Positions 6,601 through 36,599 are shown, counted from the stretch's first letter. The stretch: 64,000 bases of DNA from Thalia democratica (GCA_965202585.1 OZ241832.1:37572001-37636000), one strand, 5' to 3'. Numbers and translations: made by a program. The notes: generated from the sequence alone by a model not told the origin.

Positions 6601-9600
6601 AACTGATGATTATAATTACCAACTTTCAAAGTTTATTTAAAGTTCATTGAAGAAGGGTTTTGAACCTGAAAGCTTTTTAAACTTATACCTTTTTAAACTT
6701 AACCTGCAATGAAAGTTTGTAGACTTTTCTAAACAATCAAATGATTTTTTAAATATTATTGATACCGTATAAAATCACAAACAAAAAATTGACTGTGACT
6801 GATTTAAGCGTCGTGTTCAGTTTATAAATCTTTACAAAGGCATGGTCCTCGACAACATGTTCGCCGCCATCAACTGGTACCGGGAGCTCGTGTCGGTGTT
6901 CGCCGCCGAACAAGCGTGCTTGGGTCACGTGCGGAGGGTTTGCGCGCTCCAGTCGAGGTGTATCAGGCTGCTGCTGAAGAGCCAGTACCATTACACGCCC
7001 GCGCCCCTCGACGACACCAACCACTACCCGACCGGGCAGATGTGCTCGAGCATCAAGTCTCAGGTAGAGAGTTTTCTTTGCTAGCTTAGTTGTGCCGTTG
7101 GAATTTAAACGTGTTAAACTGAAAAGTAGCATGAGTAAGAAGCAGTTAAAAGTAATCTTTGCAACATTGTACTACATGATGGATTTGACTTTCAAAATTA
7201 TTTTTATAATTAAAACAGTTTTTTTTTTTATGTTATAAAATTCTATAAGTGTTTTAAGAAAGTATAAATAAAAGTGTATGTAAAATTTCTAAAAATTTTT
7301 TCACTTACTCAATAAACACTATGTTCCTAAACTTTAGTAGTACATTTTTGTATGAAGTTTAGAAAAAATAATAAAGTAATACTTTTGACAAGAAAAAGTT
7401 GTATTATTTTTCTATAGGTAATACAACTGTTTAAAAGATGTTTAACATACCTTTTTTGTTTTAAAAAACTAAAAGCAATAATAAATTTTCTGGTTTGTTA
7501 ACTTAAAACAAAAAAAAAGACGAGTATATTTAGTCACTAAATCGTCAATTTATTCTAGAAAAAGCCTTAAAAAGCTGAGAACTATGCATTCTTTCTCATG
7601 TTTAACAATAATGTTTTGCTATTTTTTTTTTTTTGTAAAAAACTGAAATGTAAATTCAAACCTAATAAAAGTGTTGCATTTTTTTTTCTGTGCAACGTTG
7701 AATACATTTAAATGCACGATTTGTTTTCTCATTGTATAAATAAGTATTACTTTTTATCTAATAGTTTCGATACATTCAAAAATAGTTAAATACCTCTTTT
7801 AATTAGCAAAAGTTTAGCTCTAAAAGTTTGATTCTTTATTATTATAACATGCTTGACAAAGTACACATGTTTTACGAGTTACAAAAAAATGTCAATACAG
7901 AGCAAAGGAATGATGGAAAGCCAGGAAAGCATCAACGGGGACTTCACCATACTCGGCTCCAACGCCAGCTTGAGCTCTTCTGCGAAGAAAAAACCGGGAA
8001 AGAAAACCGCCAAGCAGGAGAAAAACGAAAAGTTCGGCTTCTACTCGTACAACGAGCAAGTTTGCCTGACCGAGTTCAACATGGACGTCACGGCACTTTT
8101 AAAAAGAAAACTGGATCTTGAAAATGGTCAGTGTTCGTTAAAACAATTTTTATCAAGCAGTTTGCTTCATTAAAACAAATATTGAAATTTTCTACAAATA
8201 TGGCTATAAAAAAGTTTGAACTTGCAATTCAGCGGCCGCCGAAAACTCGATCGGGCTGAAAGAGCTGCACCTCCTCCTCTGCGACGTCACCAACAAGATG
8301 AGTCACGTGGGCAAGCGCGCGAACAAGGCGTGCCCGTTCCAGAAGAGCGCGGACGCTTCGAAGGCGTACTTGAAGCTGGAGTCTGTGAAGAGCGAGGAGT
8401 TCTACCGGCGGGTGATCGATCTGACCGCTCCCCTCTGCCGCCACCTCGACTCCCTGCTGGAAGAAATCAAGTCTCCCGATAACGTTGATGAGGTGGATAT
8501 GTATATATAGTTATTTGTTATATATATAAACATACAGTTATTATTATTATAAACTTACAGATATATGTATATTTATTATTCATAATTTTAGTTTGATAAC
8601 TATTTTACTTTGCCGTAAATTTTTTTTTGCTTTAATTATTATACGTATTTAGATTATAAAAATGTAAACTTTGTTAAAAAATTATTGTTATTTAATTTAA
8701 ATGGAGTTTAAAGAAAGTTATGCACGAAGTTGTTCATTTCTAAATAACTGCCATAATGATTAAGTTACAAAAAACAAATTTTACAGGATAGTGAGAACAG
8801 CCAACCATCTTCAAAAAAGCTCAACAACGTAATAATAACCCGGTGTTACCAACTAATCTGTGATATATTTTACAATCTTATGCTTTGGCTAGAATCTGAT
8901 AAACAAAACGGGTACTTTTTTTCATTCGAATAAACATTGGAATTCTAGTTAAATTTTCATATCCACAAATTTTTATAAATTATATTTGAAATTAGTTCCC
9001 CACGTATCAATTTTTAACAACAACTCTAACATAGCTCAACTTCTAGTTTCTTTTATATCTTATAATGTACGGCAATCAAAATGTAGATTAGTTTCGTACT
9101 AAAAAAATTTGTAGTATGTCTCTTTTCATCAGTTAAATAACTAAGTTAAATATTTCTAATACTTTTCAAGTGTTTTTTAACAACATTCTGTTTGTCGATT
9201 AACTTATCAAAACTCATGAATTAATTTAAACGTTTTTTAAACGAAAAAAGATAATTTGATTGCAATACAAGGTAAAACTGACACGATTTTTTTGTACTGT
9301 GCTCTTGAACTGTAGATTTTTACTCACGCAAAATAGGCTGACAAACTTCAAGAAGTTTTACAAGCAAGTGGCTGCCCACTACAACGAAAAACTTTCAGAG
9401 GAAGATGAGAGTTACGAAAAGGAAGCGGACTTGAAAGTTTTCATGGCCTACCTGCAAATACTGCTTCAAAATCTTCCCACGACCGGTAATTGATTGAAAT
9501 TTGTAGTGGTTTTCTCGAGCTTGTTAGTTCCTTTTTCAACTATAAGTATAATACATTGACATCAGAACATTGCTATTTTTTGGGTTAAAAGGTACAACTG

Positions 9601-12600
9601 TTGAATTTTTTGGTTTTTATATATATTATAAAAATAAATTTACCTGGTGTAAGCTTAGAATTTACCTTAAACATTATTTGAGAGACTTAAACCATGAACA
9701 ATAATAAAAGTTATGAAGATGTTTTAAGCTGGAAATTAGACAATAAAATTTAGCTTGGCAAAAGTACTTTAACTTGGCATTAAACATAAATGAAGACAGT
9801 TTGACCATAGAAAAATAAAAAAAAATTGTAAAAAAGTTTGAATTGGTTACATTGTTATCAGGGATAGCGTCGAGTGTGATGCAGCTTCTGTGCAGCGTCC
9901 TGCGAGTTGTCGAGAGTTTCGTTGAAGGGGGCGCCGATAAAAAGTTCAAGAAAATTGTCTGCGGCGGCTGCCATTCGATACTGCAGAAAGACTGGTCCAA
10001 GCTCGACACGGGTGTGTTTTATTGATATGTTTTAGCCTGCATGGGCGCTATTGACAGCTGTCAAAATATTTTTAACTTTATTTTATTTACCCGATTTAGT
10101 TTCTTTTGATTATAATAATCTTGTATCAACAAAACTGATTTATTGCGCTATCACATCGTATTTTTTCGCATATTTTTTTATAATACACCGTTTTAAAATT
10201 TAAAAGACATAGTGTAGTGTAAAATACTTACATAGGTTTATAAATATTATGTACACAAGTCTCGTTTCACAACAGCTTCATCGATTACTTCAATGATGGC
10301 CAGCGTCTTCGACGTCATGCTGCAGAGTAGCCCGGATGTTCTCGACACGGTTGAGCGCACATTGAAGATTACTTTGTGCTCGCTGCTGCCGTCCAGCGGT
10401 AACATGTTGTTCGGCCAGGACGACGACGAAGGCGCCGAAATTCCGGTTTACCCGTGCGTAAACAAAAACAACTTTCACGTTGTTCACTCAAGTCGGTGTT
10501 TTTTTACGTTTCAAAAGTTTGTAAAAAATATAATTGTAGTAAAGTTCAACTTATACTTTATAAGATGTGTTTTAAAATAATTAGATATTAAGTTTACTAA
10601 ATCAATTTAGAACTAACTGGCTAATTTAATAAGAAGTGCTTAAAAAGGTTAATAGCGTGTTGAAATTAAAATTTCTCAGAATAAAACTTGAATTTATGTA
10701 TTGTTTTTAGTAAAAGTATTAACTTAATTAAAATATCTATAAAACTAGCTTGTGATTTTTCCAAAAGTAGTGTGGTAAAAACAGGGCATAAAATCAAAAG
10801 ATTTCTAAAAAATTATTGTTGTAATGTTTTGAGTTCACAAACTTTTAACAAAACACAGAAAGCTTGGAAGTTATTACAAAAGTATCATCAAAGTTCGCGC
10901 AAGTGAAACAAAGTACTAAACCTAACAGTGATTTGCTAGTTGATCTCATATTACAATGGAGTGAAGTCGTAAAAGTTTCTTTCTGTTATTAATTAAAAAG
11001 TTATGTTAAGTCGGAGCTTACAGCAGAAAATTATTGTTAATTAAAAAAATTAATTAAGATGAATATTGAAGCAAATACATGTAATATATATTTCGGCATT
11101 TCGATAATTTTCATTCGATAACTGTAGTTTAAAATAAAACAGCAATTTATAAAATATGCTGATTTTTTTAAAGCTCTATGTTAGTTAAATGCAAATGTTT
11201 GAATTTAACAAACTTTTAATGTTTTATTAAGTTTTTTTTTATGTATTAGCTTTTTTTTAAATTTACAGGTGTTCGATTTATTGATCCGAGTTTTAAAAGT
11301 AATATCAAATAAAAACATGTTGTCTCCGACGCTGAAACATTCCCACTCATTTATCGAGGTTAGTTTATCAAGTATTTTATATTTCTGTTTTGGGCTGTTT
11401 CTAATTAGTTGAAAAATATGTTAATATGGTTTTGCCAATTATGATTCACACCATTGAATTGATCAATGTTTTCTGATAAAAAAAGTAATCAGTTAAAAGT
11501 TTAGGAGAGTAGAACTTATATATGCAGAGACCAATGCTAAATAAAATATATTTATCTTACTAATGTTAATATTCTTTACTTTTAAAGTTTTAGTGCAACT
11601 CCATAAAAATAGTTATATAATACTTAGATTTTACGTTTGTAGCTTAAAAGTATTTTAGTATTATAGAAATAAAGTTAATAACATTTAATAACATTAAATA
11701 ATATTAACAAAATTGTAAATGATAGTTTATATTTCAGAAAATACCAAGATAATACATAATTTCAATTTCAGTTCATTTTTATAATCAAATTTAAATGAAG
11801 TTTATGTTTACTTTAATTTATTTTTGAGTTTGTGAATAAAACTTACAAGCTGCATTTAGTTCAAAAAAATTATTGATTTAATCATAGGTATGTAGAGTTT
11901 TAATGTTTGGTAAATTTTTGAGCTTTTTTTAAGAAAAAAATCTATGATCAACGCTAAAATTTTCATTAATTTCTCAAATTTCGATTAAAATAAAGGTTTG
12001 TATAACGTTAGATAATACTAATCAAGTCATAAACAAATAATTAGTCTGTATTTGAAAAATCTTTTGAGTTTGTTTGAACATAATATGCTCTATTGAATTT
12101 AAACAAAGTTGTTAGTCTACTTACAGATGTTTTTTTTTTGAATTCTAGTAAAATTAAAAGCTTTTAACATGAAAAGGGTAAAAAAGCGCCAAGTTCTTCA
12201 GCAAATCTTCAAATATAAAAAAAAAATTTAAATGACAACAGAACTTCATGAAGCGAGGGATACTGGTGTGCGAGATCGCGTTCAAGCACCACCAGGATGA
12301 CGTCATCAGGGTTTTGAAGAGCATACAGAGCGCCACCAGGCAGCTCCAGCACCTCACCACTCACTCCAAAGTTTGTTGTTATCAGCTGTCTCGTTGGTGA
12401 AATTTTTACATGATTTCATTGTTTGTCGTTTTAGGTAAATGTGCATTTTGTTAAAGGTTTTTCTAATTTACTGAATTTAAAAATTGTTTAGTTTTTTTCA
12501 ATGACAATTTTATTATCATCCGCACACTTTATATTGAAATAGCTAAATATTTACAACTAACTATAAAACAAAAAAATATAAAACCGTAAAATTATATAAA

Positions 12601-20245: not shown

Positions 20246-22919
20246 TATTGTTATCTTAATCGTTGTATAATTTAAAACTTTTAAGTGGATCAGGTTTTGA
20301 TGCCTGAGTCTAACATTGCACAGTAAACAACATAGTAATAATAAGTCTGTTGATTAACATAAAACAAAACTAAACATATTTTGATTCGATAAGTACTTCT
20401 GCAGTTGAAGAATTAAGTTAAATGTTTATAATCATTATAACACAACAAAAAATATTTGTAGTAACATATATGTTATTATCTAACTTCTTTATTTTTATTT
20501 CACCTGGAAAAATTAACAAGTTTTAAAAAATTGAATGATATATTTATACACATTTATGTTATTCTATGTTTTACTTTTATATCGGAATATTTCAATACTT
20601 TTAGCTTTAAGAAAAAAGTTGTAAAAGTTTAACCTTATTTTAAAGTGTTAAGGAAAACAATAACCATTAATAAATTTTTCTATTAACTCGTTAAAAGATG
20701 TTATCTTTTTTTGAAAACAAAAAAAGAATTTGAAAGCTTTCTTATATTTTATCACTCATAAATTCTTATTTGCTTTCTTAGAACATATTAAAATCGATAG
20801 CAGTTTTTTTTTTAATAAGTATAGTAAATAAGTTTTTGATAAATTAACTATTACTCGGGTGTTTTTGAAACTTTGTATTGTACAATAAATAAGCACTTAA
20901 ACATTTTGTCAAAGTATATATTGTATCTTAGATGCAAAAAATATTTTTTATGAAATCTGTGCAGTCCATGGTGTCTTTTTTTGTAAAATATAAGTTAGTA
21001 AGATTCATTTTGTTTACAAATTTTTATAGTTGTTTTAATAAAACTAGTCAGTAAGCTATAATAAATTACAGATTGTTGTTTCTTTAGTCTTTAAACATTT
21101 AATAAAGTTGTTTATTTTAAAAAGTACAAAACCTTCAAAAAATACCTTTGGTGTTTAAAACAATAAGTATAAAGATAACAGTTTTAAATACCAAAGTATT
21201 TATTTGAAATAGAGAAACATTTAAAAATGTTTTTATTTGAGCGTCGTTTTTATTTAATTATTTTTTTAAACTATCTTAATGCTTATTTTGGCAGTACTGA
21301 TTCTTTTTTATTAACAAAAAATAAAAAAAGCTTATCGTAATTCAAAAAAAACATTTTCATTTAAATGAGTGTTTGCTTTAGTTTAAAGTAAAATTAAAGT
21401 TGTTTTAAAGAATTCAACATAATTAATTGGTAAGCCCTACTTGGCGAAACATTGTGTTATAAGAAAATTAGAATAAACAATATATCGTTAGGATATCTTT
21501 GCATATTTTCTAAGTAGGTGCGTAAATATTTTCCAGAAGTTCAAAATTTCCTTACATATAACTGGCTAAATATTATTCTATTAGTTTGTGTAAGGTAGAG
21601 TATAAAATAAAATATAAAGACATATTAATTGAATAAGATGACAACCAAATTTTAGTTTATATGAAAACAGCAGTTATTTTAAAAAACTCGAACTATTGAT
21701 TAACTTAAATGTGTTAATGTACAAGACTATAACCTCTCAAAAATAAAATTAAATACATTTCTTTATTCATATCAAAAATGTAAAAAAAGCTACATTTCCA
21801 AACTTCAATTAAATTTAGTAACATTTTTTTTAAACGTTTAAGCAAATTTGTGAAAGTTTTCATGCTTTACATACTTTTGTATCGTGTGTTTTATGTAGGG
21901 TAAATTTAAATTTTCGTTTCTTGAATTAAATAATTTAAAACTATGATACCAAGAGACTAAAATTATATTAAAACAAAAAACAAAGTAGTTTTTTTCATTA
22001 AAGTAATCAGTATAGTACTATGGGAAACAAATAAATTTATTTAAAAAATACCGTTTAGTTTGGTCGAGTAGTGAAAATTTTTCAGCTTTTTAACTACATT
22101 AAATATAAAATCATTATTAACCTACATTTTTTGGTTTTTAAATTTATTTGGTTTTTGAACTCAACATAACTGATATATATAAACAAGTAGATATTTAAAT
22201 AGGTAAACATTTTTAGGAACTGATACCTTAACTTTGCTTTGATAAACATATAGGTAAAACTTTGCTTAATTGGGTTTGTACAATGAGCTATGTATCCAGG
22301 CAACTTGAGTACCTTATCATGACGTTTACTATTGTTTGGCAATTACTACTTTGTAATTCCGTTATAATAAGTTTGAAGTACTTGAAATTAAATTTGACCG
22401 CCTTTATAAATTTATATCAAAATTTATTTGGTCGCGAAAACGTGTTTCAATTTTGCAATAGTATTAGAAAAGCTGTAACATTTGACTTGCATATATGTTT
22501 TATTTTGATAATTAAACAATTTTTATATAATTGAATTTTTATTTGTTTTTATTTTGTAGATGTTTGATACAGAAGGAATTTTGTTTAAAAATAGATTACT
22601 ATGTATAAATATTTTTAACAAACAGCTTGTTATGTGTTATTTCTAAGCAAGTGTTTTCAACTAAAAGCACGTAAAATATATTATCTTAAAAGTAAACTAA
22701 AAACAAATTAGTTGATATACTGCCAACAAAACCAACTAAAAAGAAAGATAAAAGTCAGTGCTTAAGCTTAAATGATTTTTTTTCCAGCTGTTCGTTGTTT
22801 TTTGATAGTAGACTATAAATAACAAAATAAAAGTTACACAGTAAAGTTAAGAAAAAAATGTTTTATTAGCAGGGAAGATATAAAATTAAAATTATCATTG
22901 TAGCATACATACAAATAAA

Positions 22920-25900
22920 ATGGCACCGTGTATTCAACTGCACAGATTTATACAGCTACAAGACAAAGAACGAAGTCATGTGTTCACCTTCCTCATTGAG
23001 AATCCTCACGAAATTTCAACTTTTGACGTTAGATCGAGGGAATTCAATTTTGCCGGCCACAGGTGGTACGTTTACACGGGAAAGCCAAACAATGAATACT
23101 TTAGGTTTGTTTTGATATTTTTTTATATATCTAATCAAAAGATTAGATATAGTTCGGAAAGTTCTCATCAGAGGAATACAAAGCTAACATAAAATAAGAT
23201 TTTCAAAACTTATAAAAAAAGACGAATCTTTAGTAGTTTAAAATAACTTATCTTATAGTATCTTTGTGTTCTACTAATGGGAATTGCTCGAAATACATCT
23301 AGTTTATTGTATTATGTGTCCTGATTTTTTAATTATATTTCGAGTAAGCAATTTTTCAACTTATTAAATTTGTCTAAATATTTTATTACGACATTTAAAA
23401 ATAAAACATACTAAATGAAACTTAATTTTAGTCAGTTTTAATAAAACTCGAATATATTGAGACATTTTTGTATACATGCTGATATACGTTTTCAAAATGT
23501 TTCGATGGCTGATAAAACAGAATAGTGAGTTGATATTTTATAAAAACTACACGTACTGAAAAAACACACACTTTTTACCGTCTACCAAAGATAGTAAACT
23601 CTTAAATCATAAAAACGAAAAACTATTTGTCATGCGTAATAACGTACCGCTTCACTTTCCAGCTTCTACCTGAGGATAGTCAACCTGGGCAAGGACGTGC
23701 GAGTGCACACGGTTTACTCCTTCAACGTGATCAACCTCATCAATGCCGACAACAACTACATCTACTACAGCCCGCCCCAGGGCCGCATCTTCAGCCGCAA
23801 CGATGACGCGTTGTCGTGGGGATGGAAGGAGTTCATCCGTAGAGAGGTAAACTCAAAACATCCACAGCTCGATTAATTATTTAAAAAATAATGTGTTCAT
23901 TTCTTTCAAGACTCTACTGAAACCGAACGGGGGATTCTTGTTTGATGGAAACAAGGCGTTGGTCGAGCTTGAATGCAAGAACTTCAAGACAGTCATCGAG
24001 GAAACGGTGCAGTTACCTCAGCTGTCCCCGTCACACCCCTTCCCCATGGTCCACACTTCTCCTTTCAGCGTCGGCGGTTTCGCTTGGCAGGTGAGAATTT
24101 TCTGAAAGCTTTTGGGTGAAATTTAGACAAAAGTTGCCGTTAACTAGGTCTTCTATGGATTTAGCAGTTCAGCATGTTTTACTTTAACTTTATGTTTTCG
24201 TATTCTTTCACAATAGATTAACGAAATTCAAAGTTTAAATCTGCTAGGTTGGGAGAAATTTTTGTTCATATGACCTCTGATTAAGAGCACTCAAGTTGAT
24301 GCCAATATTTTAACTATGATTTATTTAAGACAAAATTTAAATTTTTTTACGCATTTATAACTTTTTAAAGACAAAATTATTAGAGTTTTACCATTTTATA
24401 CTATTGTAAGCTGACGATAATATTAGTTATGGTTATAATATAGTTGTTATTGCTTTAACTCGTATTTTTTTAAACAACAACAAGCTGTCCCACTCTTTTA
24501 TATATAAAGGCAGACTACCGACTAACCTTTAACTATCATTATATTGTGACAAGGTTACTTAATAGTAATGTTATTCATTGTTTAATATTTAAAAAAAATT
24601 AAGAACTAACATATTTTTACATATACGGCACGGCGTATTTTTACCTGGGAAACAAATTGTACGAAACAAACAAAGTTGACAGTTTATAAAATAACTGTTT
24701 AAAAGTTCGCTTTTAATTTTATTTTGAGTTATTAGTAGCTCTTAGCAAATAATTATTTTGTTGCAGTTTTCTTTAGTTTTCTTTTTTATATAATTTTCAA
24801 GCAACATTTTTAACTATGGTGGATTACGACGACTTTTTTGTAACAAACCTAGCCTGAAAAAAACACTTAATCTAATAAGTTTGGTCAGCTACTTGAAAAA
24901 GGCTGCCGATCCATGACATGTAACTTTTAACTACAACAGTGATATATATCAAATCTTGAGTTTAGATAAATACCAACCTTTGAAAATTTTAGGTTGACTA
25001 AATTATATTGACAGATCCGAGTGTTTCCTGATGGGCCAGACGAAGAAAACCAAGGAAATGTCGCCTTGTTTCTTCACGCTACGACGGCTAATCACCTCGT
25101 CAGAGTTAAAGCCCGATTTTTGATTGAAGGACAGGTAAATCTTGTTTTTGTTAGCTGACATCCATTAGCTTTTTACTGTAACTTAGATCTTTAATAATCG
25201 GATTGCGTAAGTAAAGGTTTAAATTACTTATAGAATAATTTTTTATATTAAATAAAGTTATGTTTTTTAGGATAAAATATATCAATCTAAGACAATTAAA
25301 GTATTTATATTAAAATATAACATTAAATCTTATACAGCCGTCTCCAGTTGTCTACGAGCACACTTTTCCTCCGAACTGCATCAGCGAAATGCCGAGCGGA
25401 GTGGCTTTTCCTAACGACAGCGAGTTCATGTCTTCGCTGACGGACAACAAGTTGAGGGTGGGAGTGGAGTTCATGTCCGTCACTGAAGTAAGATGCCTGT
25501 TTTAATATATATATATTTATTTATTCATATTTGGCTTATATTCATACAAGCCAACCAGCTTCCGTTTGTTTAGTAACGGTTCAAAGTTGTATAAATTAAA
25601 AATTGAAAAAATCTAACCTTTCAGTGTTTTGGTTAATAGCTTCTAATTTTTAACTAGAACCAGTTAGGTTTGGGAAGTTTGTTTTTGTTTTGGCAAAAGT
25701 TAAATTAATTGCAAGACTCTTGAAGCAACATAACTTTAGCACTGTTGATATTTTCAGCCGAAAACTAAAAAATCACGCAAAAATAAGATAATTTTGAATT
25801 AACTCTACATTAATTTATAGGTAAACGAAGTGCACATAACGCTTAGTGAGCCAACGAACCTACCGACGGTTTGCGTCACTCCTTTCGAAGATCTCACAGG

Positions 25901-28699
25901 GTGTGCCTGGGTAATAAAAACCTTGCAAGCTAGTAAGCTGAAGTTGAAACTCGACCAAAACGAAAAGACAGTGACAGGGCTGATGGAGTTTTATCACAGG
26001 TATACTTAAGCCACCTTTCATTGAGTAAGATAATACTAAAAGAAAATGTTTCTTCAAGAAAATGTTTAAAAGCGACAAAATAATTTTTCAAACAAAATTT
26101 AATTTATATACAGTTTATAAACGCTAGTTTTTATATTTGTATACGCTTTTAAAGAAATGTAAAAATATTTTCAGTTGTTTTTTGATCTAAAATAACTTGA
26201 ACCAAGTTACAAACATATGCTAATCTAAAAATAGCATAAATAATTTTTGATTCTACTAAAACAAAAACCGATGTTTTAGTTTTACTTTATTTTGTTTTGA
26301 TGGAATAAAAGACTTAATTAAATCAATGATTCATTATCTAAAACAAAATTAAGCTATTTTAAAATTAATCTTTTAAAGATTTCATTAATGGTGTGCTTTC
26401 TCTTTTATAAAAAAACATAGAAATATACTCGATCTTAAATTCTTGATAAAAACAACTTTTACCTATAAAAATTTTGTAAAATAAACATTAATCGATTTCA
26501 CTTGTTAAGAAATAGTCATACTGTAGTTTTTTTAATTTTGAACAAAACTTATGTAGAGTATTTCTAACTATAAATGGGCTTTAGTATAAACCGAACATTG
26601 AATTTTGAAGTCAAAAACAAATAGAAATATACTAAACTTTATAACAACTCAAGGTAGATAAAAGCTTAAATGTACAACTATTTTGTCGACATCAATTTTT
26701 TTATTAAAAAGTCAACTTAAAATTTAAAACAAGTCAATAAACAGACAAGTTGCTTGGAATGCTACTTTGGTTTCTCCCGCCTGCGATGACTGCAGCATGA
26801 ATATCGAGCTGAACAAAAAAGGCGTCCTAATTGGCTATTTCGGTGACCATTGGAGCGATGCTGACGTCATAAAGAGCGAAATAAACATCGCGGAAATGAT
26901 AAACGACGACAACTTGTACCGAACTGACGTTGATGACGGTTACGAGAGGTAAATATAAACAATTTTGTCCGATAGTGTATGTTAAGTGTTAAAATATTTA
27001 TAACGGTTATATCCTATTAGATAGGCTTTATTTTTACTTTTAATAGCAAAATGTTACATTTGGTTTATTTATATGTAATCCTTTAACCTCACCAACTTCT
27101 AAAAGTACTTAGCATAGTCAAAAATTGTACTTGAGGTTAAAAACTAAAATAAAAAGTTCCTTTTTTCTTTTAAAAGTTACATTTGGTTCATTTATATATA
27201 AACCTTTAACTTCACCAACTTCTAGGTGTACTTAAGCATAGTCAGAAATTGTACTTGAGGTTAAAAACAAACTTATCAAACATATTTTTTTAACGAATTT
27301 GTTTTTACGCATAAATTAGATTGGAAATATTTAAAAAATTAGTATTCAACTGTTATGCGCACTTTTGGTACTTTAATTAACAAAACTTACATAAATGTTT
27401 AAAGTTTCATTTATTTTATAAAACTAATGAAATTCCCAGGTATTCATATATATCTGTTCACGTAGAAATATTGTCAAATCACCTGCTTTACAAGACTCCG
27501 GCACCATCACCTACTGGGGACAGGGAGAGGAAATTACTCTACAACGCAAGGTTGTTTAAAAAGTTTTAGTTTAAAAATGTTTGGTTATTTTCATTCTAAG
27601 ACAATCTGTTACAGCATTGCAATTATCCAGAGTTTGTTTTACTTTTGTTCGTAATTAGTTTGTAATAATCTAAACCTTATTATTTAAGGTACATGAATTT
27701 AAAACATCTCTTTACTTGTTTGTATATAATACAAATTCTAGTATGTTAGCACTAGTTTATTTGTTGTTATGAATTTTACCTAATACCTCTGATTGAATTA
27801 TTATGTATGAAAACAACTAAAGAAAACACAACTAACTTTTGAAAATAAAACTAAAGTTTAAAAGAACAAGTTTTAACTTAATATAAAAATAACTAGGGAT
27901 GATAATAATTTAAATTCTCATAATTGCTTCAACCGCACTTATTTTATTTTTTTTAGCCAGGATTTATTTCGGCCATCATCAACAAAGTTGAGATGTTTTA
28001 TGCCATCGATAATAAATAGTGAACCGCACGACCAACAACAACAGCATCTGAGACAACCTACGACCAGTTTCGTCTTAGGAACCGTGAAGCTTATTATCGA
28101 TGGCATAAAACATCTCAACTTTATTGATGATGGCCGAAATAAACACTGGCTAAAACTGATTAAACGAGCGTAGAGACTAAAATCTCACATTAAGCTGACA
28201 ATGTCTTAGACGTTGGGCTGTGAACAATTTGGCGGCGTCAATTTTTCAGACTTTACCCACAAACGGTCGCTTTAGTGCATATGCACTTAAGCCTGCTCGG
28301 TTAGTATCACAACAGCGGTTTCACACGACTATGCCTGCCTGATGAGTCCTAAAAAGGACAAAACCGGTCGTAGGTTGTCTCGGATGCTGTTGTTGTTGGT
28401 CGTGCGATGAATTTCAATGTTTATTATTTTATTTCTAAAATAAAATGAGTTGTTAAAAAGTTATTCAATGTAAATTTGTCACAGAAAAGAAAAAGGACAA
28501 ATTCAAACTAAGTATCAGGAGCTTCTGCGGCAGAGGGCAAGTTTGGAGCACAAGTGTCAGCATCTGGAGAGAGAAAGGTCGGAGTTGATGCACAGGACTG
28601 AGGGCAGGACCGCAACTGCCGAAACAATAACTCCTGATTACACGAAACTCTTGTTCGACATGATGGCAGAACTGTCTCGTCGCGCTGGATTTCAAAACA
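22920..28699 (+). CDS. MATH/TRAF-like repeat region and coiled coil (N-terminal part of the fusion model)
   Basis: Repeated MATH-like beta-strand signatures: SREFNFAGHRWYVY..FSFYLRI, SWGWKEFI, TSPFSVGGFAWQIRVFPDG..GNVALFLH, PFEDLTGCAWVI..RQVAWNATL. Followed by heptad-like KYQELLRQRASLEHKCQHLERERSEL. Resembles a recalled, uncharacterised invertebrate tandem-MATH family. Confidence 0.7.
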
Positions 28700-31600
28700 G
28701 TCAGTATTTAGAATTTTTTCATGAAAAAACATCAGTTTATTGCAGTAGCATGATTAAAACAATTATTTTGTATGTAACTAAAGGGAGTATTAACTAAAAG
28801 TGAAATATATTTCTATTATAAAAAGTATATAAACTACCTTTATTATGTTCTCTTACAGATTTTTTTTTGATTAATTTTATTATATAAAGCATCCATCATT
28901 TTAAATAATTCAAATGATTGAAAGTTGTTAAATATAGACATTAAGTTTATAAAAACATTTTTTTGTTTACACTAAAGAACTAATGTTTACGAACTGCAAT
29001 AAAACTGAGCATTTAAAAGTAAACTGTGCAAACTTAGTAAAACTAAATAATAATAATAAATTCAAAACAGTGGTACAAAACGAAGAAAATTTTTCAAAGC
29101 AATATCAACCACCAAATAAAAAACCAGAAAAAGAATTGCAAAATGCTTATGCAGTCTATAGAGCTAATTTCGAAATGTAAATGTTTTTTTTTTCAAAAAA
29201 TTATGGTCAAAATTTTAACAAAATTTCTTTCAGGTTAGTAAAAGACTCTAGCTTTGATGAAGATAATGTAAAAATTCTAGAAGAAAAAGTAGAGTCTTTA
29301 AGTATAAGTTTAAAAAATTACTTGCAATCGAAAACAGGACTACGAATAACCAAAACTGTTATAGGAGGTAAAAAGAAAACAGACATTTTTTGGTATAAAA
29401 AATTTAAATGTTAAGACTTTTCCATCATTATATTTTGATTTTTCCACAGACAAAAATAGGTTTAACTTAATTTGTTCTAAAACAAAGTCTAATTACTAGT
29501 TAGTTGTAGAACCTATTAATTTGTTATAAAAAAAAAAATATATATAAACAGGTTCAATAGGAACGGGCACTTGTACTTGTAACAGAATCGATGCAGATAT
29601 TTACATCAGCTCACCGGACATTCCGTACAATGGTCACTCTACGTGGCTTCCTTCTTTCATAGTTGCCATCATGACTACGTTGAAATCCGGGTGTGAAGAC
29701 GGAGTGTTGAAAGATTTAAGCGAGTTTTATTGCAAGTGAGAAACGCATTAGAGAAAGTATTAGTTCAAATATCTTGATATCGGTTTATCATTAACAAATT
29801 ATTATGGTAAGTTAACAAATAACATGGCACTTCAGGTTAAGAATTAGATGTTTGAGTTAAGTATGAATATATTGAAAAATGTTAATATTTACTGTTTTTA
29901 TGTTAGAACTGACTATTTTCATTTATTTAAAGATTAATGTTATCTAAACTTGCATTCTTAGTTTAATGCTATTTAATACTACTTTGATTTTGTTTTTGAT
30001 TGATGATATCAAGTTTTATTTTATTAGTTAATATACTATTAAAATGTTATTTATCTTTAAAAAATTAACGTTACTCAATGTCTCAAGTTGTATAACAGGG
30101 ATAATCATACTTAAGTGTTATTTATAACTTAATATAAAACAATTTTAAACTTATTTCTAAAAGTATTTGCAAAAAACATTAAGTTACAAATAGAGCATTT
30201 GAAAAGTTGACAAAAAATGTTTAAAAAACATAAACTTTTGTTAAGCATAAGTTTCACAACTTTGCTTTCAAACCGTGATAAAAGAATAATAGCAGAAAAA
30301 ACTAAGAAATACTGTTTTTAGTCCATAGCTGAAATAAACGGTACGAGTTTTTACAAAATTACAACGTTTGTAACTGTAAAAAGTGCTTTGTAATGAATGT
30401 ATTTTCATACGCAAAATTACGTCATTTGTTTTATACAGTTGTTTTTAGCAATATACTTAAAGAAACTCAAAATATTCAATGTTTGTTACGAGTTATAATT
30501 GAGTTACACCATAAAAGTTGACTTAAAAATGCTCATTTTTACCATTTAGAAATCGGAATAGTTATAAAACCCGCCAAAGAATTTAAAAACCTTGCTTTGG
30601 AAACCAAAAAGTACTTTGAAAAAAAAAAAAAACTTTTCATGCAATTCCTATACGGTTGCTTAATAACTAAATTGTCTATATTTAAAGAGTTTTAGTAAAT
30701 AAGCAATTGTTATTGAAATTTTATTAGTATTCAACAGGCTTATTTTTTAAAAGAGTATTAGATATAAATTAACAATAAACGTTTATTAAGTGATAAACAA
30801 AAAAATGTTTGCAAACACGTGTTAGAGTACACAAATATTTAATTTATTTTCAATTCGCTTGATTTTTAAAAAAAAGTCAATACCTACTGAAAGTTAAACA
30901 CAGTTTTTAAAAATAAACAAACGAAACAGCGATTACTCGATACAAATGATGCTGGAGGGCACGATAGAAATCGACTTGTACCTCTCCTACGACTGGACGC
31001 ACCGGTCGGAAAGTAGGGGCGACCAAAGTCCGACGGGGTTCGGGTACGAAGTGATGTACGAAGAATTGTTGCGTCAGAGGACTTCCGACAACTTGTGCTG
31101 GTTCGCTTCGGACGCCGCCGAACTGCAAGTCAAGTTCGTCAACGAGCAGAGTGAGGAGGTTTTGTTTTTTTGTTTTATAAAGTGCAAAGCTTCGATTTTA
31201 TTTTATATAAACATTAAAAAAAATTTACTTTACAACCCAACAAAAAATTGCGCAAAAAAAATTGCACATGTTGATAAAAAAAAAACTAAATAATCTCTGG
31301 CTTTGAAAGTCTGTAGTATAAAGGATTTTGTCTTAAAGTATCATTTTATTTGTTTTGACATGTTTGTATTTATGAAGTAATAACCAAAAGTTTATTTGGA
31401 AAAAAAAATGCCAATTTTTGTTTTATTAACTTTTTTTTATGTAATAAATTTCACATAAATGTTAAACATAACTTCATACTTGCAAAAATTCATATTGATA
31501 AATACTAAAACTATGACTTGAAACATCAGTAAAATTTAAAACCAAATTACATTAAAAAAAGGCTTTTTTACAAAAAAAAAATTGTAGAATTTCCAGTAAA

Positions 31601-34600
31601 AAATTTACAAAATTTTGCAAAAAGTCATTGTAAACTTTTGATTGTTACGTCACTCATTTTTTTAGTTTTATTCTTCTTAGGTTTTGTTTTGTCGGGGTAG
31701 TAAGAGACATCTTTTTAGTATATTAATTTTTAAATAAAGAAATAGATCGACATATAATTTTGGTAAGATATTCTTAAAATTTCTAGTAGTTTAAGTAGAT
31801 AACTTTGTCCGTGGACGTGTTAGCAAAATACGTAGTTTTTTTGCATTTTTATACATAAATGTTTTATCGCATAAAAGTTGTAAAGCAAAAAACAATAAAA
31901 GTTTCAGGTCTTACCTACTTTAATCAAGTCCATTGACCATACAAACTTATAAGCTTCGAGTGTTGAAAGTTAAAACACTCGTGTCAACAACAAGCTTTAC
32001 TTTTATTATACTCAACACACAATTTACTCCCCGTACGCGGAGTGTATGATCCTCCAAAGCTCCCTGATCGGATCGTCAATGCCGACGTCGTTCTCTCCCG
32101 TCCCGTTTCCCTGCTGGCCCCATATAAGCGCGCCCGTTATCGTGTGGCAGTTGTAATTCTCAACACCTTCCACATCGCCCTCCTCGTAAACAACTTCATT
32201 TTCAAAACCCACCCCGTCGTCGTTCCTCCCCACCTGCACAGTCGAGTTCTTCCCCAAGTTCGTGGTCACGAACAGCCGGGCGTCGCTGTAGAACCCCTCG
32301 GTCGACCCGCTGTGCCCGAACACCTTCGTTATCCTCGCCCTCAAACCTCTGGTGCACATCCACTCATATTCCTGCTCCCACCCCATGCTGTACCCCGCGG
32401 TGTTGCTCTTCGTGGCGTTGCCCTCACCATCTTGCGTGGTCATCAGCATCTTCCGGAAGTTTTGGCGGGAAAGCGGCCCGGCGAAGTCGTGGTTCAGGTC
32501 GCGGTGGTACATGGTGGCGTAGACGTCGAGGAACTTTTGCAGGTCGCCCGACGTCGAAGTCACGCCTTCCGAGGGCTGCTTGTAGCCGAAGTCGACTTTC
32601 TCGGCGTTGAAGGCCTCGAAGTTCCTGGTTTGTTTTTTCGCGAGAACGGGCACGGAAAAGGTTTTGTCGACTTTTACTTTCGGGTCGTACTCTTTGTTTA
32701 GCAGTTCGGAAAACTGCTGGGCCTTTTCGAGTTGCCATTTCTCGCTGACGTTACCACTTTTCAGAGGTTCGAAAAACCCGTACGGGACTTTGAAATGATT
32801 TGCGTCATAATTTGTGTTCAGAAGGCCGATGTTTAAAATTTCTTTTGTGGCCAAGTCCGTGAAGCTCTCGTTTTTTATGTGGCTCAAAATCAGGCCTGCC
32901 AGGTTGAAACCGTTGTTGGAATATTCAAACTTTCCGGGTACTACTTGCAACTTCTTGTAGTCGAGCATGGACATGAGCTTCTCCTTCTCAGATTTGCTGA
33001 ACAGGTTTTGAAGGTGCCAGCTCTCCTCCTGGTACACGAGCCTCGCCTCATCGTAGTAATGCTCCCACCCGGACAAGCACGACGGCAGCAAGCGGTAGGG
33101 CCATCTGTTTCTATCAGTCCACACTCTTACACGGTTCTCAGGTTCACTGCCGTCCTCTTTTTCACCCTCGTCTTCCTTATCCGGTGGTGGCAAAATTTCC
33201 ACTTCATTGAAAGAATTGTCCTTCAGCTCTTTGACGTACCTCCACGTGTCTTGCTGCAGCAAACCGTTTTGGCACTCCTCCTCAACCCTTCCAATCACGT
33301 GACTCGTGAACGGCTTGCTTATGCTGGCGATGTTGCCCTTGAAGTCCTTGTCGGCGCTCACGGGGTTCTCGGCGCTGTGGTAGCCGAACCCCTCGTGCAG
33401 CACCCGCTTGCCCTTGTTGGCGAAGCAAAGGGAAAGTCCCGGACCCGCGAACTTGTTCCTCAGATGCTGGGCGAAGAGCTTGCACGAGTCGATGCAGTTC
33501 CTTCTCTCGTGCTTTATGATTTTTTGAAGGACTTCGTCGTTTGCTTGCATTTTGGGGCGGGCGATTTTGGAGGTTTAACTTGTGCTACATAAGAATAAAT
33601 AATGTTGTTTAGTAAAAATAAGTGAAAGTTTTCAACTGTGGTATTGGTTGTCAGGCGCGTTAAATTACGTGTTTACTCATTTTTTAATGAAAAAAAGTAT
33701 TTTACAAAATTAACAGATTTTCATTGTCAAAGGAAATATAGCTGCTAACTTTTTTTGTCAAAATAAGTGATCAAAATAATTTTAACTTAACTTTCACACA
33801 GTTTTGACATTAATTAAATAACGTTCTTTTATTACTAGTTAAAAGTATTTAAGTCTTTTTTAATAAGCATTGAACTGAATGTTTATAAATTTATGTTTCT
33901 AAACTCTTATTGAAATTAGTTTCAAAACAAGTTCTCTTCAGAAAAGGTCTCATTCTACCCAATACCTTATCATCTGGTGATCAAAGTGGTACGATCGAAC
34001 CTCTGTGTTATCTTGAGCTTTTCTCACGACAGATTAAAGGCTAGGATTTGGTTAAATATTAAACACAACCGTAATGGTTAAAATACTTTTACAAAATATA
34101 AGTTTCGCTTTGCAATACTTAAAGTTTTGAAACTGAAATTGACTAGTAATACTTTTAAAATTATTAAAAAAAAACTTTGCTAACTAACAAAAATAACTTA
34201 ACTAGTATTTGTTTAACGGAAAATTAATGTTGAAAAAAGTAACTGCATTATGATAAAATAGTTGTACTAACTGATATCCTTAATATTTTTAAGTGAACAA
34301 AATAAGATTAACAAGTACTTTCCGACAAATTCATTAGCCAACAAAATAAAGTAAAATTCAATCTAATGATTTTTGCAAAATAAATACTACTATATTTAAG
34401 TTATGACCTTTAATTTTACCTTAACTGAAATAAGTTAGTCTTTTTTTAAATATTCTGTCAAAAAACTATTAAAAAGTTGAATTACTTTAAACAAACTCAA
34501 GATTCTTTATATTACAACTACATCAATTTGTAGATGTAAAGAAATATTTTGTTTCTAAAATGGTCAAAATAAGTAAAAAAGTGTTAATGTATAAAGTTAC

Positions 34601-36599
34601 AATTTTTTAATAATTATAACTACTTTTTATCAAAAAAAAAAGCTATTCTATTGCCTCTGCTCGAGTTGCTCCCGCTCGAGTTATTCCTGCTCGAGTTATT
34701 CCTGCTCGAGCTCAACTTCTTACTACCTGTCTTATTGTTCTCGCATTGCAGTGAATTCTATACAAAGATCGTGATTTTTAACTTACATGGTGCTGAAAGT
34801 TCATACAGCTCCATCATTAAGCCATTCAACAAATGTCTGTATTGAAAAATTTCTACATATTTAACATGCAGGTTGAGCTTGCAGCTCCAATTTTACAAAA
34901 ATTTCAAATATAAAATATAAAGATTAAAAAATAAAATAGTAGCAGAAAAGTATAGAACGGTCATTTCTACATTTTGCTGTATTTTTTGTACAAGTTCTTG
35001 ATTATATATCTTTCTTGTTTTTTAAATTAAATATTAAATTTATATATTAAACATATAAACTTAACCGTTTGTTAACAAAAGGTTCTAGCGTAACTAGTTC
35101 GCTGGAATATATAATAATAACAAGTTATACAGTAATAAAAGAAGGATACTGTAAGCGTAATAAAAGAAGGATACTGTTTAATTTGTTATTATTATGGTAA
35201 ATTTTTTTATTAATATCTATAAATTTAATTGAAATAGTTTCAATTTAGAAAAAACTATTAACTAATAAAGCAAATTTTTAGGTCTAATCGTTTACTGATT
35301 TCAAAATTAACTAAATTTTTAAAGGTTATTGCTTGGTTTTATTTGTTAAAATTAAACTATTAAGTTTTACAATGTATTTAAGCTGTAGAAAAACTGAAAT
35401 AATTTAGAAATAAAAACAAACTGTGCATTACAGTTACAAGTATAAAGCAATGAAAATACATAAAGAAAGAAAAAATGTTATTACTCGTAACTGCATCCTA
35501 ATTATTACATATTTCACTATTAAAAACAACAAATGTAGCATTTATTAGAAAATCAACATGAGTAAAAATTAATTCATAGTTCAATTAAAAACAACAGGTG
35601 AAGGATGTCATAAAAATACTGAAGCAGTGGCGCAACTCGTGCGACTGGAAGCAGGCCAAGTGGAAGCCACCAAGCTACCTCATATCCCTGCTTGTCATCC
35701 GTTGCCATGACAGCATGATGACGCACAGCTCTTCGCCAAGGAGCAACTTCAGAAGATCGCTGCTGAAGAACTTCGTCAAGCTGGTGCTCGCGACGTCGAA
35801 CAGCAACAAGTGACATTTTATTTTTATTAGAAATAAACTTTTAATGTTATGTAAGTAAAGAAAAGCGTCTACTTTTTTTTAAGGTTTTTCACTAATAAAT
35901 TTTTATAATTTTTGGTTGCTTGTAAATTAGAAATTTGAATATTAAAACATATCATTAACTTAGGTTGTACTTTTTATTTCAATTAATTGAAGGTGCTTGA
36001 GACCAAATAATGTTTTCAATAAGCCGCCTTTATCCCCACACAAAAACTTTACTTTCAAATGTTACTAATTTGATACTTTTTATAACAAAGTTTTACGTCT
36101 AACTTATATAAGCATAAAAGTTTATTGTGTGTTAAGGTTGAAAGTGTTGTAACTAATCGACGTTTTCAGTCGTACAAAACTTTTGTTTCATTCAGTATCA
36201 GTTTAAAGTTTTTCTATAACAATCATTTATTTTTGATAACTCAATAAAAAAATTACTTTATATAGATGAAAGTTAACTGTATGTCTGTAAAGTTATCATA
36301 TTATTTATTGAACAAACGTTTTAACTCCCAGCGGCTCGTCGTCGGTGGTCAAGCTTTCCTGGTCCCGATTCTACGACACGGACGACTTCAACATCGAGTA
36401 CAGCGGCAACACCGGCCACGACTGCCCGCCCATCGTGCAGGACCCGGCCAACCCGGCCAACAACGTCGCCGAGCGGCCCGTCAGCTGGATACCGTTCAGG
36501 AAGAACCTGGAAAAGTGGGCGCAGAACCTGCAGCTGGTGAAGGAGCGACCCCAGATGAGCTCGGCGTCGATAGACATAAACCGAGTGAGGATCAAGTGA
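22920..36599 (+). CDS. Predicted fusion protein: tandem MATH/TRAF-like repeats, coiled coil, then an OAS-like 2'-5' oligoadenylate synthetase domain (886 aa)
   Basis: GT-AG exons 22920-23104, 23663-23846, 23911-24090, 25015-25134, 25338-25487, 25821-25999, 26745-26948, 27440-27550, 28485-28699, 29071-29176, 29234-29367, 29552-29735, 30930-31158, 35598-35809, 36332-36599. Total 2661 nt, phases compatible at every junction, no internal stop. An optional 30-nt exon at 27957-27986 also preserves frame. Confidence 0.72.
27053..27268. repeat. Intronic direct duplication of about 92 bp (27053-27144 and 27176-27268)
   Basis: GTTACATTTGGTT(T/C)ATTTATA...CACCAACTTCTA...GCATAGTCA.AAATTGTACTTGAGGTTAAAAAC occurs twice. 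Confidence 0.85.
28026..28405 (+). mobile_element. 5'-truncated Penelope-like retroelement remnant (inverted partial pseudo-LTR, ORF tail, pseudo-LTR with hammerhead)
   Basis: Inverted arms 28026-28080 and 28347-28405 (GCACGACCAACAACAACAGCATC(T/C)GAGACAACCTACGACC(A/G)GTTT). Short ORF tail HLNFIDDGRNKHWLKLIKRA* resembles the end of Penelope GIY-YIG ORFs. Hammerhead motif in the right arm. Confidence 0.72.
28333..28375 (+). ncRNA. Minimal type-I hammerhead ribozyme with core G12 replaced by A (predicted inactive)
   Basis: Stem I GCCUGC/GUAGGU; core CUGAUGA (28339-45); stem II GUCC-UAAAAA-GGAC; AAAA instead of GAAA (28360 = A); palindromic stem III ACCGGU; GUC cleavage triplet at 28367-69. Confidence 0.75.
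29234..36599 (+). CDS. OAS-like nucleotidyltransferase domain (C-terminal part of the fusion model)
   Basis: ITKTVIGGSIGTGT..RIDADIYISS (GGS plus DxD), SIQMMLEGTIEIDLYLSYDW (third Asp), ELQVKFVNEQSEEVKDVIKILKQW, KPPSYLISLLVI, PPIVQDPANPANNV. All are OAS-family signatures in the expected order. Confidence 0.9.
32024..33550 (-). CDS. LACTB-like serine hydrolase (beta-lactamase/penicillin-binding fold), 508 aa, intronless, nested in an OAS intron
   Basis: Uninterrupted ORF with GPGLSLCF..VLHEGFGY, IASISK (SxxK), RLLPSCLSGWEHY (LACTB RLLISHLSGIRHY), FEYSNNGF (YxN), GVTSTSGDL, FGHSG. Lies within intron 31159-35597 on the opposite strand. Confidence 0.88.
   Translation of the reverse strand: MQANDEVLQKIIKHERRNCIDSCKLFAQHLRNKFAGPGLSLCFANKGKRVLHEGFGYHSAENPVSADKDFKGNIASISKPFTSHVIGRVEEECQNGLLQQDTWRYVKELKDNSFNEVEILPPPDKEDEGEKEDGSEPENRVRVWTDRNRWPYRLLPSCLSGWEHYYDEARLVYQEESWHLQNLFSKSEKEKLMSMLDYKKLQVVPGKFEYSNNGFNLAGLILSHIKNESFTDLATKEILNIGLLNTNYDANHFKVPYGFFEPLKSGNVSEKWQLEKAQQFSELLNKEYDPKVKVDKTFSVPVLAKKQTRNFEAFNAEKVDFGYKQPSEGVTSTSGDLQKFLDVYATMYHRDLNHDFAGPLSRQNFRKMLMTTQDGEGNATKSNTAGYSMGWEQEYEWMCTRGLRARITKVFGHSGSTEGFYSDARLFVTTNLGKNSTVQVGRNDDGVGFENEVVYEEGDVEGVENYNCHTITGALIWGQQGNGTGENDVGIDDPIRELWRIIHSAYGE
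34657..34716. repeat. Four tandem copies of a 15-nt unit (CTGCTCGAGTTATTC)
   Basis: ctgctcgagttgctc ccgctcgagttattc ctgctcgagttattc ctgctcgagctcaac. Confidence 0.85.

Follow-up and report, generated by a model that had tools for sequence, protein, structure and literature searches.

The locus at positions 22920–36599 of the Thalia democratica window (the window being the whole stretch of 64,000 nucleotides analysed) raises the question of whether a 2'-5'-oligoadenylate synthetase (OAS) is here part of a single protein that begins with MATH-type domains and a coiled coil, or whether two neighbouring genes give this impression, and what such a protein would do. Reconstruction of the splice sites and translation of the plus strand gave 15 exons forming one open reading frame of 886 amino acids plus stop (2661 nt; Table 1). 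All 14 introns of the rebuilt model are of the GT..AG type and the phases at the three bridge introns (27550/28485, 28699/29071 and 29176/29234) are 2, 1 and 2: the exon number, matching phases, stop-free frame and bridge peptides on which a sequence-only reading had based its proposal of a fusion were all reproduced. The ATG at 22920 is closely preceded by an in-frame TAA (22887–22889), and a hidden N-terminal extension is therefore absent. The exons are short and GC-richer, with the 64-kb window as a whole being very AT-rich (~24–38% GC per 2-kb bin); a search of the whole window against Rfam at gathering thresholds returned no match. A FANCD2-like gene lies upstream of the fusion gene, and the window also holds a nested beta-lactamase-like ORF.

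Table 1. Exons and protein features of the Thalia democratica locus in window coordinates (L006, orthologous genomic contig; L002, metatranscriptome contig of a third species; X1, X2 and X6, RNA contig sets)
Feature	Position	Strand	Residues	Content and support
Exon 1	22920–23104	+	1–62	start codon and first half of MATH 1; 80% aa identity to L006
Exon 2	23663–23846	+	62–123	second half of MATH 1; Pfam MATH_2; junctions in RNA
Exon 3	23911–24090	+	124–183	last part of MATH 1, first part of MATH 2; 70% aa identity to L006
Exon 4	25015–25134	+	184–223	MATH 2 core; Pfam MATH_2
Exon 5	25338–25487	+	224–273	end of MATH 2; 73% aa identity to L006 (tblastn); junctions in RNA
Exon 6	25821–25999	+		third N-terminal domain
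Exon 7	26745–26948	+		third N-terminal domain
Exon 8	27440–27550	+		end of third domain (to 27494), near-invariant motif, start of zipper
Exon 9	28485–28699	+		zipper (to 28596), then linker
Exon 10	29071–29176	+		linker
Exon 11	29234–29367	+		end of linker; OAS lobe from 29301
Exon 12	29552–29735	+		OAS nucleotidyltransferase lobe
Exon 13	30930–31158	+		OAS nucleotidyltransferase lobe
Exon 14	35598–35809	+		OAS1_C lobe
Exon 15	36332–36599	+		OAS1_C lobe, stop codon
Third N-terminal domain	25821–27494	+	274–419	exons 6, 7 and part of 8; beta-rich, conserved; 69% identity to L006; junctions in RNA
Near-invariant proline-rich motif TPAPSPTGDRERK	27495–27533	+	420–432	exon 8; unchanged in L006, a single G-to-A substitution in L002
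Leucine zipper	27534–28596	+	~433–475	across exon 8/9 junction 27550/28485; junction in X6 and X1 RNA
Fast-evolving linker	28597–29300	+		end of exon 9, exon 10, start of exon 11; 26% identity to L006; junctions in X2 and X6 RNA
OAS nucleotidyltransferase lobe	29301–31158	+		end of exon 11, exons 12 and 13; 43% identity to L006; junctions in RNA
OAS1_C lobe	35598–36599	+		exons 14 and 15 with stop codon

Two independent samples supplied the RNA contigs on which splicing was assessed: X6 stems from an organism-A run, X1 and X2 from a marine metatranscriptome of 2016. These contigs are assembled from short reads, and a single contig across two genes proves no single transcript. For introns 1–8 (22800–28750 examined), GT..AG joints were found in both X6 and X1, and for introns 1–2 also in X2: they include junction 23104/23663 (X6 and X2) as well as junctions 23846/23911 and 24090/25015, which flank exon 3. 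One X6 contig (record 13, 1266 nt) carries exons 1–7 and one X1 contig (record 3, 297 nt) covers exons 7-8-9, the shorter side of the bridge joint 27550/28485 being supported by 42 nt in X6 and 102 nt in X1. Further downstream (26700–31200 examined), X2 record 9 joins 28580–28699, 29071–29176 and 29234–29369, whilst X6 record 23 (1434 nt) starts 42 nt before exon 9 and runs through 28483–28699, 29234–29365, 29550–29735 and 30930–31160: its 106-nt gap between exons 9 and 11 has the exact length of exon 10, and its loose end at 31160 reads into the first bases of exon 14. In case of intron 14 (35809/36332) the support is one of length, the 520 nt left over in X6 record 23 corresponding to exons 14 and 15 plus ~40 nt. 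The contigs thus account for all 14 junctions, and the three bridge junctions, which the sequence-only reading had singled out as critical, are spliced in X6 together with X1 (27550/28485) or X2 (28699/29071 and 29176/29234).

Could the apparent fusion nonetheless arise from two adjacent or overlapping genes, one encoding the MATH domains with the coiled coil and the other the OAS, through read-through or through contigs chained at exon 9? The RNA support does consist of assembled contigs, the OAS exons have a somewhat greater X1 depth (31–36) than the MATH exons (19–25), and the only annotated relatives, the "2'-5'-oligoadenylate synthase 2-like" protein P0022 (370 aa) and H2XZL5 (P0004, 293 aa) from Ciona intestinalis, are annotated as OAS only. 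However, both junctions of exon 9 are spliced and in frame on single contigs, with X6 record 23 beginning in exon 8 and extending to the 3' end, and exons 7-8-9 together on X1 record 3, and X6 depth is alike on both halves (27.9 and 34). Two specific transcripts had been named that would speak against the fusion, one ending after about 28797 and one with a separate OAS start at ATG 28983, and neither was seen among the X1, X2 and X6 RNA: depth is 0 at 28814–28964, and the adjoining bins 28663–28813 and 28965–29115 contain only the share of depth occupied by exons 9 and 10 (in X1, 31 x 45/151 = 9.2 expected from the exon share against 9.25 observed). Both a separate OAS gene from ATG 28983 and a transcript ending in the retained intron 9 after 28699 are ruled out by this pattern. 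Sequence differences between RNA and window can also be read in the frame of the model: at 52 listed exon positions, 43 changes are synonymous and nine non-synonymous (26:3 in exons 1–8, 6:3 in exons 9–11 and 11:3 in exons 12–13), an excess indicating purifying selection on this frame throughout, bridge included.

An exhaustive phmmer search with exon 15 among 1.84 billion protein representatives returned only 15 matches, none of them of ~880 aa: the best were fragments, namely the Ciona UniRef entry P0004, a Logan transcript (P0003, contig L001), a JGI metatranscriptome product (P0002, contig L002) and an ENA fragment. The closest named proteins come from Ciona intestinalis, with a more distant relative in Branchiostoma, a pattern that marks the genome as most probably that of a tunicate. 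Contig L002, from the metatranscriptome of a third species, holds a single ORF in which the exon-7 tail is followed by exon 8, the zipper, the linker and the N-lobe of the OAS; its exon 8 is 92% identical to the window in amino acids and unalignable in nucleotides (no blastn match to the window), and on this comparison it is a different species transcribing the same fusion. In the L001 transcript, the conserved exon-9 tail (PDYTK.LFD..) is likewise in frame with its OAS. Scanning for the exon-8 motif (two-row alignment) identified four near-identical genomic contigs from a JGI metagenome (L004–L007, 44% GC), which carry exons 1–9 and 12–15 in the same order and on the same strand within ~10 kb; in L006, where the equivalents of exons 10 and 11 were located too, the orthologue comprises 15 GT..AG exons and 875 aa with no internal stop. 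Phases agree with those of the window in 14 of the 15 exons, intron 6 sitting 36 nt further downstream. Neither the FANCD2-like exons of the window nor its downstream exons or nested beta-lactamase-like ORF found a match in L001–L007. The OAS half of L006 (aa 502–875) is 65.5% identical to Ciona P0022 and that of the window (aa 498–869) 42.5%, and thus the fusion spans considerable tunicate divergence; by these alignments, at least two other species share the conserved arrangement.

The orthologues also bear on the possibility of two separate genes: L006 maintains frame and phases, L002 reads through in one ORF in another species, and Ciona P0022 begins at a Met aligned inside the equivalent of exon 9 where L006 has none, which is what a 5'-truncated model would give. 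P0022 indeed looks like such a truncated gene model when aligned in this way. Together with the spliced junctions this leaves two separate genes as a very improbable explanation, and we proceed with a single fusion gene, beside whose full-length transcript there may be an additional minor OAS-only isoform, e.g. starting within exon 9 where P0022 starts.

Turning to the composition of the N-terminal half, Pfam MATH_2 was matched by exon 2 (profile positions 53–116 of 136, E 0.014, 16.0 bits) and by exon 4 (positions 35–76, E 0.076, 13.7 bits), and the L006 exons matched at the same, collinear profile positions (exon 2: E 0.0016, 19.1 bits; exon 4: E 0.0053, 17.4 bits). The scans were run on single-exon peptides, and since every exon holds just part of a domain all four matches (13.7–19.1 bits) lie below the curated cut-off of 32 bits; apart from weak coiled-coil-type matches of window exon 9, MATH_2 was the sole family matched among the 18 peptides from exons 1–9 that were scanned. 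The exon sizes are compatible with two complete MATH domains of ~135–150 aa each, with several strand motifs that may resemble the SPOP type, and the sub-threshold matches point to two MATH-type domains in this half of the protein. For the third domain (aa 274–419), exon-level Pfam scans of window and L006 gave no match, and hhalign comparison of the three N-terminal domains for internal repeats revealed no significant likeness: the best pairing was domain 2 with domain 3 (E 0.04), in which the third-domain strand "TPF..L.GC.W" is weakly matched to a strand of MATH 2. PDB profile searches with the single exons 2, 3 and 4 yielded chance matches only, and ESM Atlas returned nothing useful for exons 2, 6 and 7, the exon-2 positive control included. 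The tandem MATH/TRAF-like repeats of the sequence-only reading are accordingly probable for two domains, which are matched below the cut-off in both species; the third domain has no family.

The TRAF-like character suggested for this architecture was not borne out: no exon of the window or L006 gave a Pfam match to RING, zinc finger or BTB, the protein begins directly with MATH 1, and its MATH domains lie N-terminal to the coiled coil. A coiled coil between the N-terminal domains and the OAS is present as proposed, in the form of a zipper of five heptads (I-L-L-L-L at 7-residue spacing) with weak matches to coiled-coil families; leucine-type heptads were also visible in L006 and L002 in an alignment read by eye. 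The linker that follows is set apart by its GC3 of 0.15–0.20, compared with 0.5–0.95 elsewhere in the gene.

In case of the C-terminal half, exon 15 alone reaches 23.7 bits with Pfam OAS1_C (PF10421), above the cut-off of 19.9 (profile positions 109–176), exon 14 matches positions 43–82 (E 0.03), and the relatives score 63–71 bits. The nucleotidyltransferase active site is defined by G-[GS], followed some 10 residues later by [DE]-h-[DE]-h, and a third carboxylate; the translation contains the corresponding residues GGS (aa 589–591), DAD (aa 603–605; 29590–29598) and Asp 666 (30973–30975), the latter in an IEIDLYL strand. Structural matching was performed with the relative P0022 in place of the window's own spliced protein, to whose OAS half it is 42.5% identical: P0022 matched solved structures of OAS2 (1.4e-16), OAS1 (4e-11) and OASL (4e-6) and no other fold. 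Domain, active-site and structural evidence combined place the C-terminal half firmly within the OAS family, in agreement with the synthetase originally proposed. Pfam gave no match to a ubiquitin-like domain after OAS1_C, the ORF ending 17 aa beyond the stretch aligned to P0022 (aa 869 of 886); nor was there a match to the Mab-21 domain, OAS1_C being the sole match in the OAS half of the window and in the relatives. The OAS half presumably belongs to the OASb group, as the OASa group is confined to jawed vertebrates (PMC10400998).

Membership of the family leaves room for a real fusion in which the OAS module serves mainly as a non-catalytic RNA-binding or scaffold unit, as in human OASL, with signalling left to the MATH-zipper part. 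Loss of catalysis does occur within the clade, GGS and D-x-D being replaced by GGG and D-T-T in the L001 relative, and OASL provides a precedent of an inactive OAS joined to interaction modules (PMC10400998). Against this, the window has kept GGS, DAD and the third Asp, and G-S and D-x-D are present in L006, L002 and Ciona P0022/P0004 alike; we hence regard a non-catalytic module as unlikely and treat the OAS half as a putative active enzyme in what follows.

With vertebrate OAS1/OAS2 (4ig8, 1px5 and 9h1z, to which P0022 matches at 1e-16 to 1e-10) the Thalia protein shares the nucleotidyltransferase lobe with G-S, D-x-D and third Asp followed by the OAS1_C lobe; vertebrate OAS1–3, however, consist of OAS units only, whereas here one unit follows ~560 aa that comprise the MATH domains, the zipper and the linker. 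The OASL class, which has C-terminal ubiquitin-like domains, likewise joins an OAS unit to protein-protein interaction modules (PMC10400998). The two differ in that OASL carries two C-terminal UBL domains and is inactive in human, whilst the Thalia protein has MATH domains and zipper at the N-terminus and intact catalytic residues; as its ORF stops right after OAS1_C, the class features of OASa/OASL are absent. Branchiostoma "AK5" gene models (P0013 and P0016–P0020, 1030–1222 aa) are likewise predicted to have a long partner N-terminal to their OAS unit, the latter belonging to a related clade (32% identity), but this partner consists of three adenylate-kinase domains and not of MATH domains.

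Typical TRAF proteins contain RING, zinc fingers, coiled coil and MATH, with coiled coil and MATH forming trimeric peptide-binding adaptors. The MATH-type domain beside a coiled coil is common to both, yet the TRAF-N coiled coil precedes a single TRAF-C MATH domain, whereas the Thalia order is MATH, MATH, third domain, zipper and OAS; there are two or three MATH-type domains, neither RING nor zinc fingers, and an enzyme is attached. By its domain order the Thalia fusion protein is not a TRAF. It also differs from SPOP and other MATH-BTB adaptors in lacking BTB (no Pfam match), and from the cGAS-like receptors of the Mab21 family, which have a Mab-21 domain, in that its OAS half matches OAS1_C and the PDB matches of P0022 are to OAS only.

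Immune enzymes fused to adaptor domains are common in invertebrates, and both the OAS family and other OAS fusions are known already. What would be new is the MATH-zipper-OAS arrangement, which the protein sets and literature searched do not show: the exon-15 query found no MATH+OAS protein among the 1.84 billion representatives (a query that independent fusions in other phyla would escape), and the literature searched contained no description of a MATH-OAS fusion, in line with the earlier impression that the architecture was undescribed. A search for long OAS fusions (567–1804 aa) with the OAS region of the amphioxus protein returned only the Branchiostoma adenylate kinase-OAS proteins, and protein searches with the L002 and L001 products only four short OAS proteins of tunicate or metatranscriptome origin.

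What could the function of such a protein be? Short linear peptides are the ligands of MATH domains in TRAFs, SPOP and USP7, and a parallel zipper would place two or three OAS domains next to one another. The two halves evolve at different rates: identity between L006 and the window is 0.81 for MATH 1, 0.80 for MATH 2, 0.69 for the third domain and 0.67 for motif plus zipper, as opposed to 0.26 for the linker and 0.43 and 0.48 for the N- and C-lobes of the OAS. This combination of a slow MATH-zipper half with a fast enzyme half suggests a fixed docking and oligomerisation module that carries a diversifying catalytic or RNA-sensing module. Dimers or trimers would form through the zipper, and short peptide motifs, on a pathogen protein or on a conserved host partner, would be the sites to which the slowly evolving MATH module docks the enzyme. 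The OAS module, which evolves rapidly, would produce 2'-5'-linked oligoadenylate-type nucleotides, probably upon RNA binding. Nucleotide signalling would thereby be tied directly to a scaffold for protein interactions, in animals that lack the OAS-RNase L pair of vertebrates; the oligomeric sensor linking second-messenger synthesis to an adaptor scaffold, as envisaged in the sequence-only reading, is in this respect a reasonable proposal. Taken as a whole, the data are best explained by a single genuine gene of the order MATH-zipper-linker-OAS that encodes a partner-tethered, oligomeric OAS-type enzyme, to which we assign a probability of roughly 60%: an oligomeric, tethered enzyme is favoured because of the peptide binding by MATH domains and the clustering by zippers in known families.

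The same conservation pattern can be turned towards a catalytic fusion without an immune role, i.e. a housekeeping or developmental nucleotidyltransferase, e.g. for RNA 3'-end modification, that is targeted by its MATH domains to a conserved cellular partner. The high conservation of the MATH half (80% identity, near-invariant motif) suits a fixed host partner better than it suits an arms race, the locus has ordinary genes as neighbours (FANCD2-like upstream) and the transcripts were found in unchallenged field samples. The enzyme half, on the other hand, belongs to the OAS family proper and evolves much faster (0.43–0.48 identity), as defence genes commonly do; neither of the two arguments settles the matter, and we consider a non-immune role improbable. 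A bolder version of the tethered enzyme would have the MATH module itself act as the sensor, either of viral or pathogen peptides or by being freed from its own PAPSP pseudo-ligand, after which clustering via the zipper would activate the OAS, triggered by protein and not by dsRNA, with the signal passing to a receptor other than RNase L. This we hold to be rather a long shot; if true, it would constitute a protein-triggered OAS in the closest invertebrate relatives of vertebrates.

For the partner-tethered OAS-type enzyme that we favour, the significance lies in the question of how OAS-type enzymes signal outside jawed vertebrates. RNase L is absent outside this group, and a yeast test found no coupling to it for vertebrate OASb proteins, which are of the non-vertebrate type (PMC10400998). 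Public tunicate annotation contains only a truncated, OAS-only version of the gene, and surveys of domain architecture would therefore have overlooked the fusion. With MATH domains and a zipper covalently attached, this conserved and expressed OAS gives a tangible entry point to OAS signalling: the ligands of its MATH domains and the partners of its zipper are candidate upstream or downstream components, reachable in tractable ascidians.

Comparison of the MATH-zipper-OAS fusion gene with its orthologue on L006, a metagenome contig from a second species, reveals that intron 6 (window 26000-26744; L006 3400-3961) lies 36 nt, or 12 codons, further downstream in L006, with the phase unchanged in the other exons compared; the position in the window is confirmed by RNA. 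Exons 10 and 11 (29071-29176 and 29234-29367) stand apart in composition, exhibiting a GC3 of only 0.15-0.20 and an intron-like GC content of 28-29%, compared to GC3 values of 0.4-0.95 in the remaining exons. These two exons code for the least conserved region of the protein (26% identity to L006) and also encode the start of the OAS fold.

Intron 8 harbours an inverted-repeat element with a sub-threshold match to the type I hammerhead ribozyme. The copy number of this element is enormous, with a word depth of about 260,000 in the DNA run X5, and the RNA is also rich in it. At position 28360 the hammerhead copy in the window displays an A as opposed to the G found in nearly all RNA contigs (assembled short-read transcripts), and it is this G that restores the CGAAAC core of the hammerhead; a second, partial core is present on the opposite arm of the inverted repeat, near 28060-28080. 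Intron 13 houses an ORF of the beta-lactamase/serine hydrolase family, antisense to the OAS gene and with a GC content of 47% against roughly 28% in its surroundings. This ORF is missing from the orthologous intron in L006, which is far shorter than that of the window. Upstream of the fusion gene lies a FANCD2-like gene, for which the Pfam matches are weak but collinear (exons 3816-4082 and 8220-8507), and no immune gene cluster was seen around the fusion gene in the window.

Features within the window and in a related transcript contig
Feature	Location	Strand	Evidence
Inverted-repeat element	window about 27950-28450, intron 8		word depth in DNA run X5
Type I hammerhead ribozyme motif	window 28333-28375	+	Rfam RF00163, 28.9 bits (below the gathering score of 34), E 5e-5
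Beta-lactamase/serine hydrolase family ORF, 508 aa, no introns	window 32024-33550	-	Pfam PF00144, 4e-22
FANCD2-like gene, multi-exon	window about 2400-12400	+	Pfam FancD2
OAS relative, Logan run SRR27980872	L001:262-1251		motif reading

In the case of L002 (769-3056), a metatranscriptome contig from a third species, the reading frame moves from 2 to 3 near nt 770-800, inside the OAS domain, and beyond a low-complexity stretch there follows a second ORF of 412 aa with a RING finger (Pfam zf-RING_2, 1e-4); the contig may represent either a polycistronic transcript or an assembly artefact that joins separate transcripts (a chimera).

OAS units related to that of the fusion gene are also found in Branchiostoma (amphioxus), where predicted models of 1030-1222 aa (P0013 and P0016-P0020), annotated either as AK5 or as uncharacterized, contain three adenylate-kinase domains followed at the C-terminus by an OAS unit (NTP_transf_2 and OAS1_C). 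Gene prediction yields such putative adenylate kinase-OAS fusions in more than one Branchiostoma species as well as in hybrids. The OAS relative on the transcript contig L001 is probably a catalytically inactive copy, since GGG and D-T-T replace the GGS and D-x-D motifs of the family.
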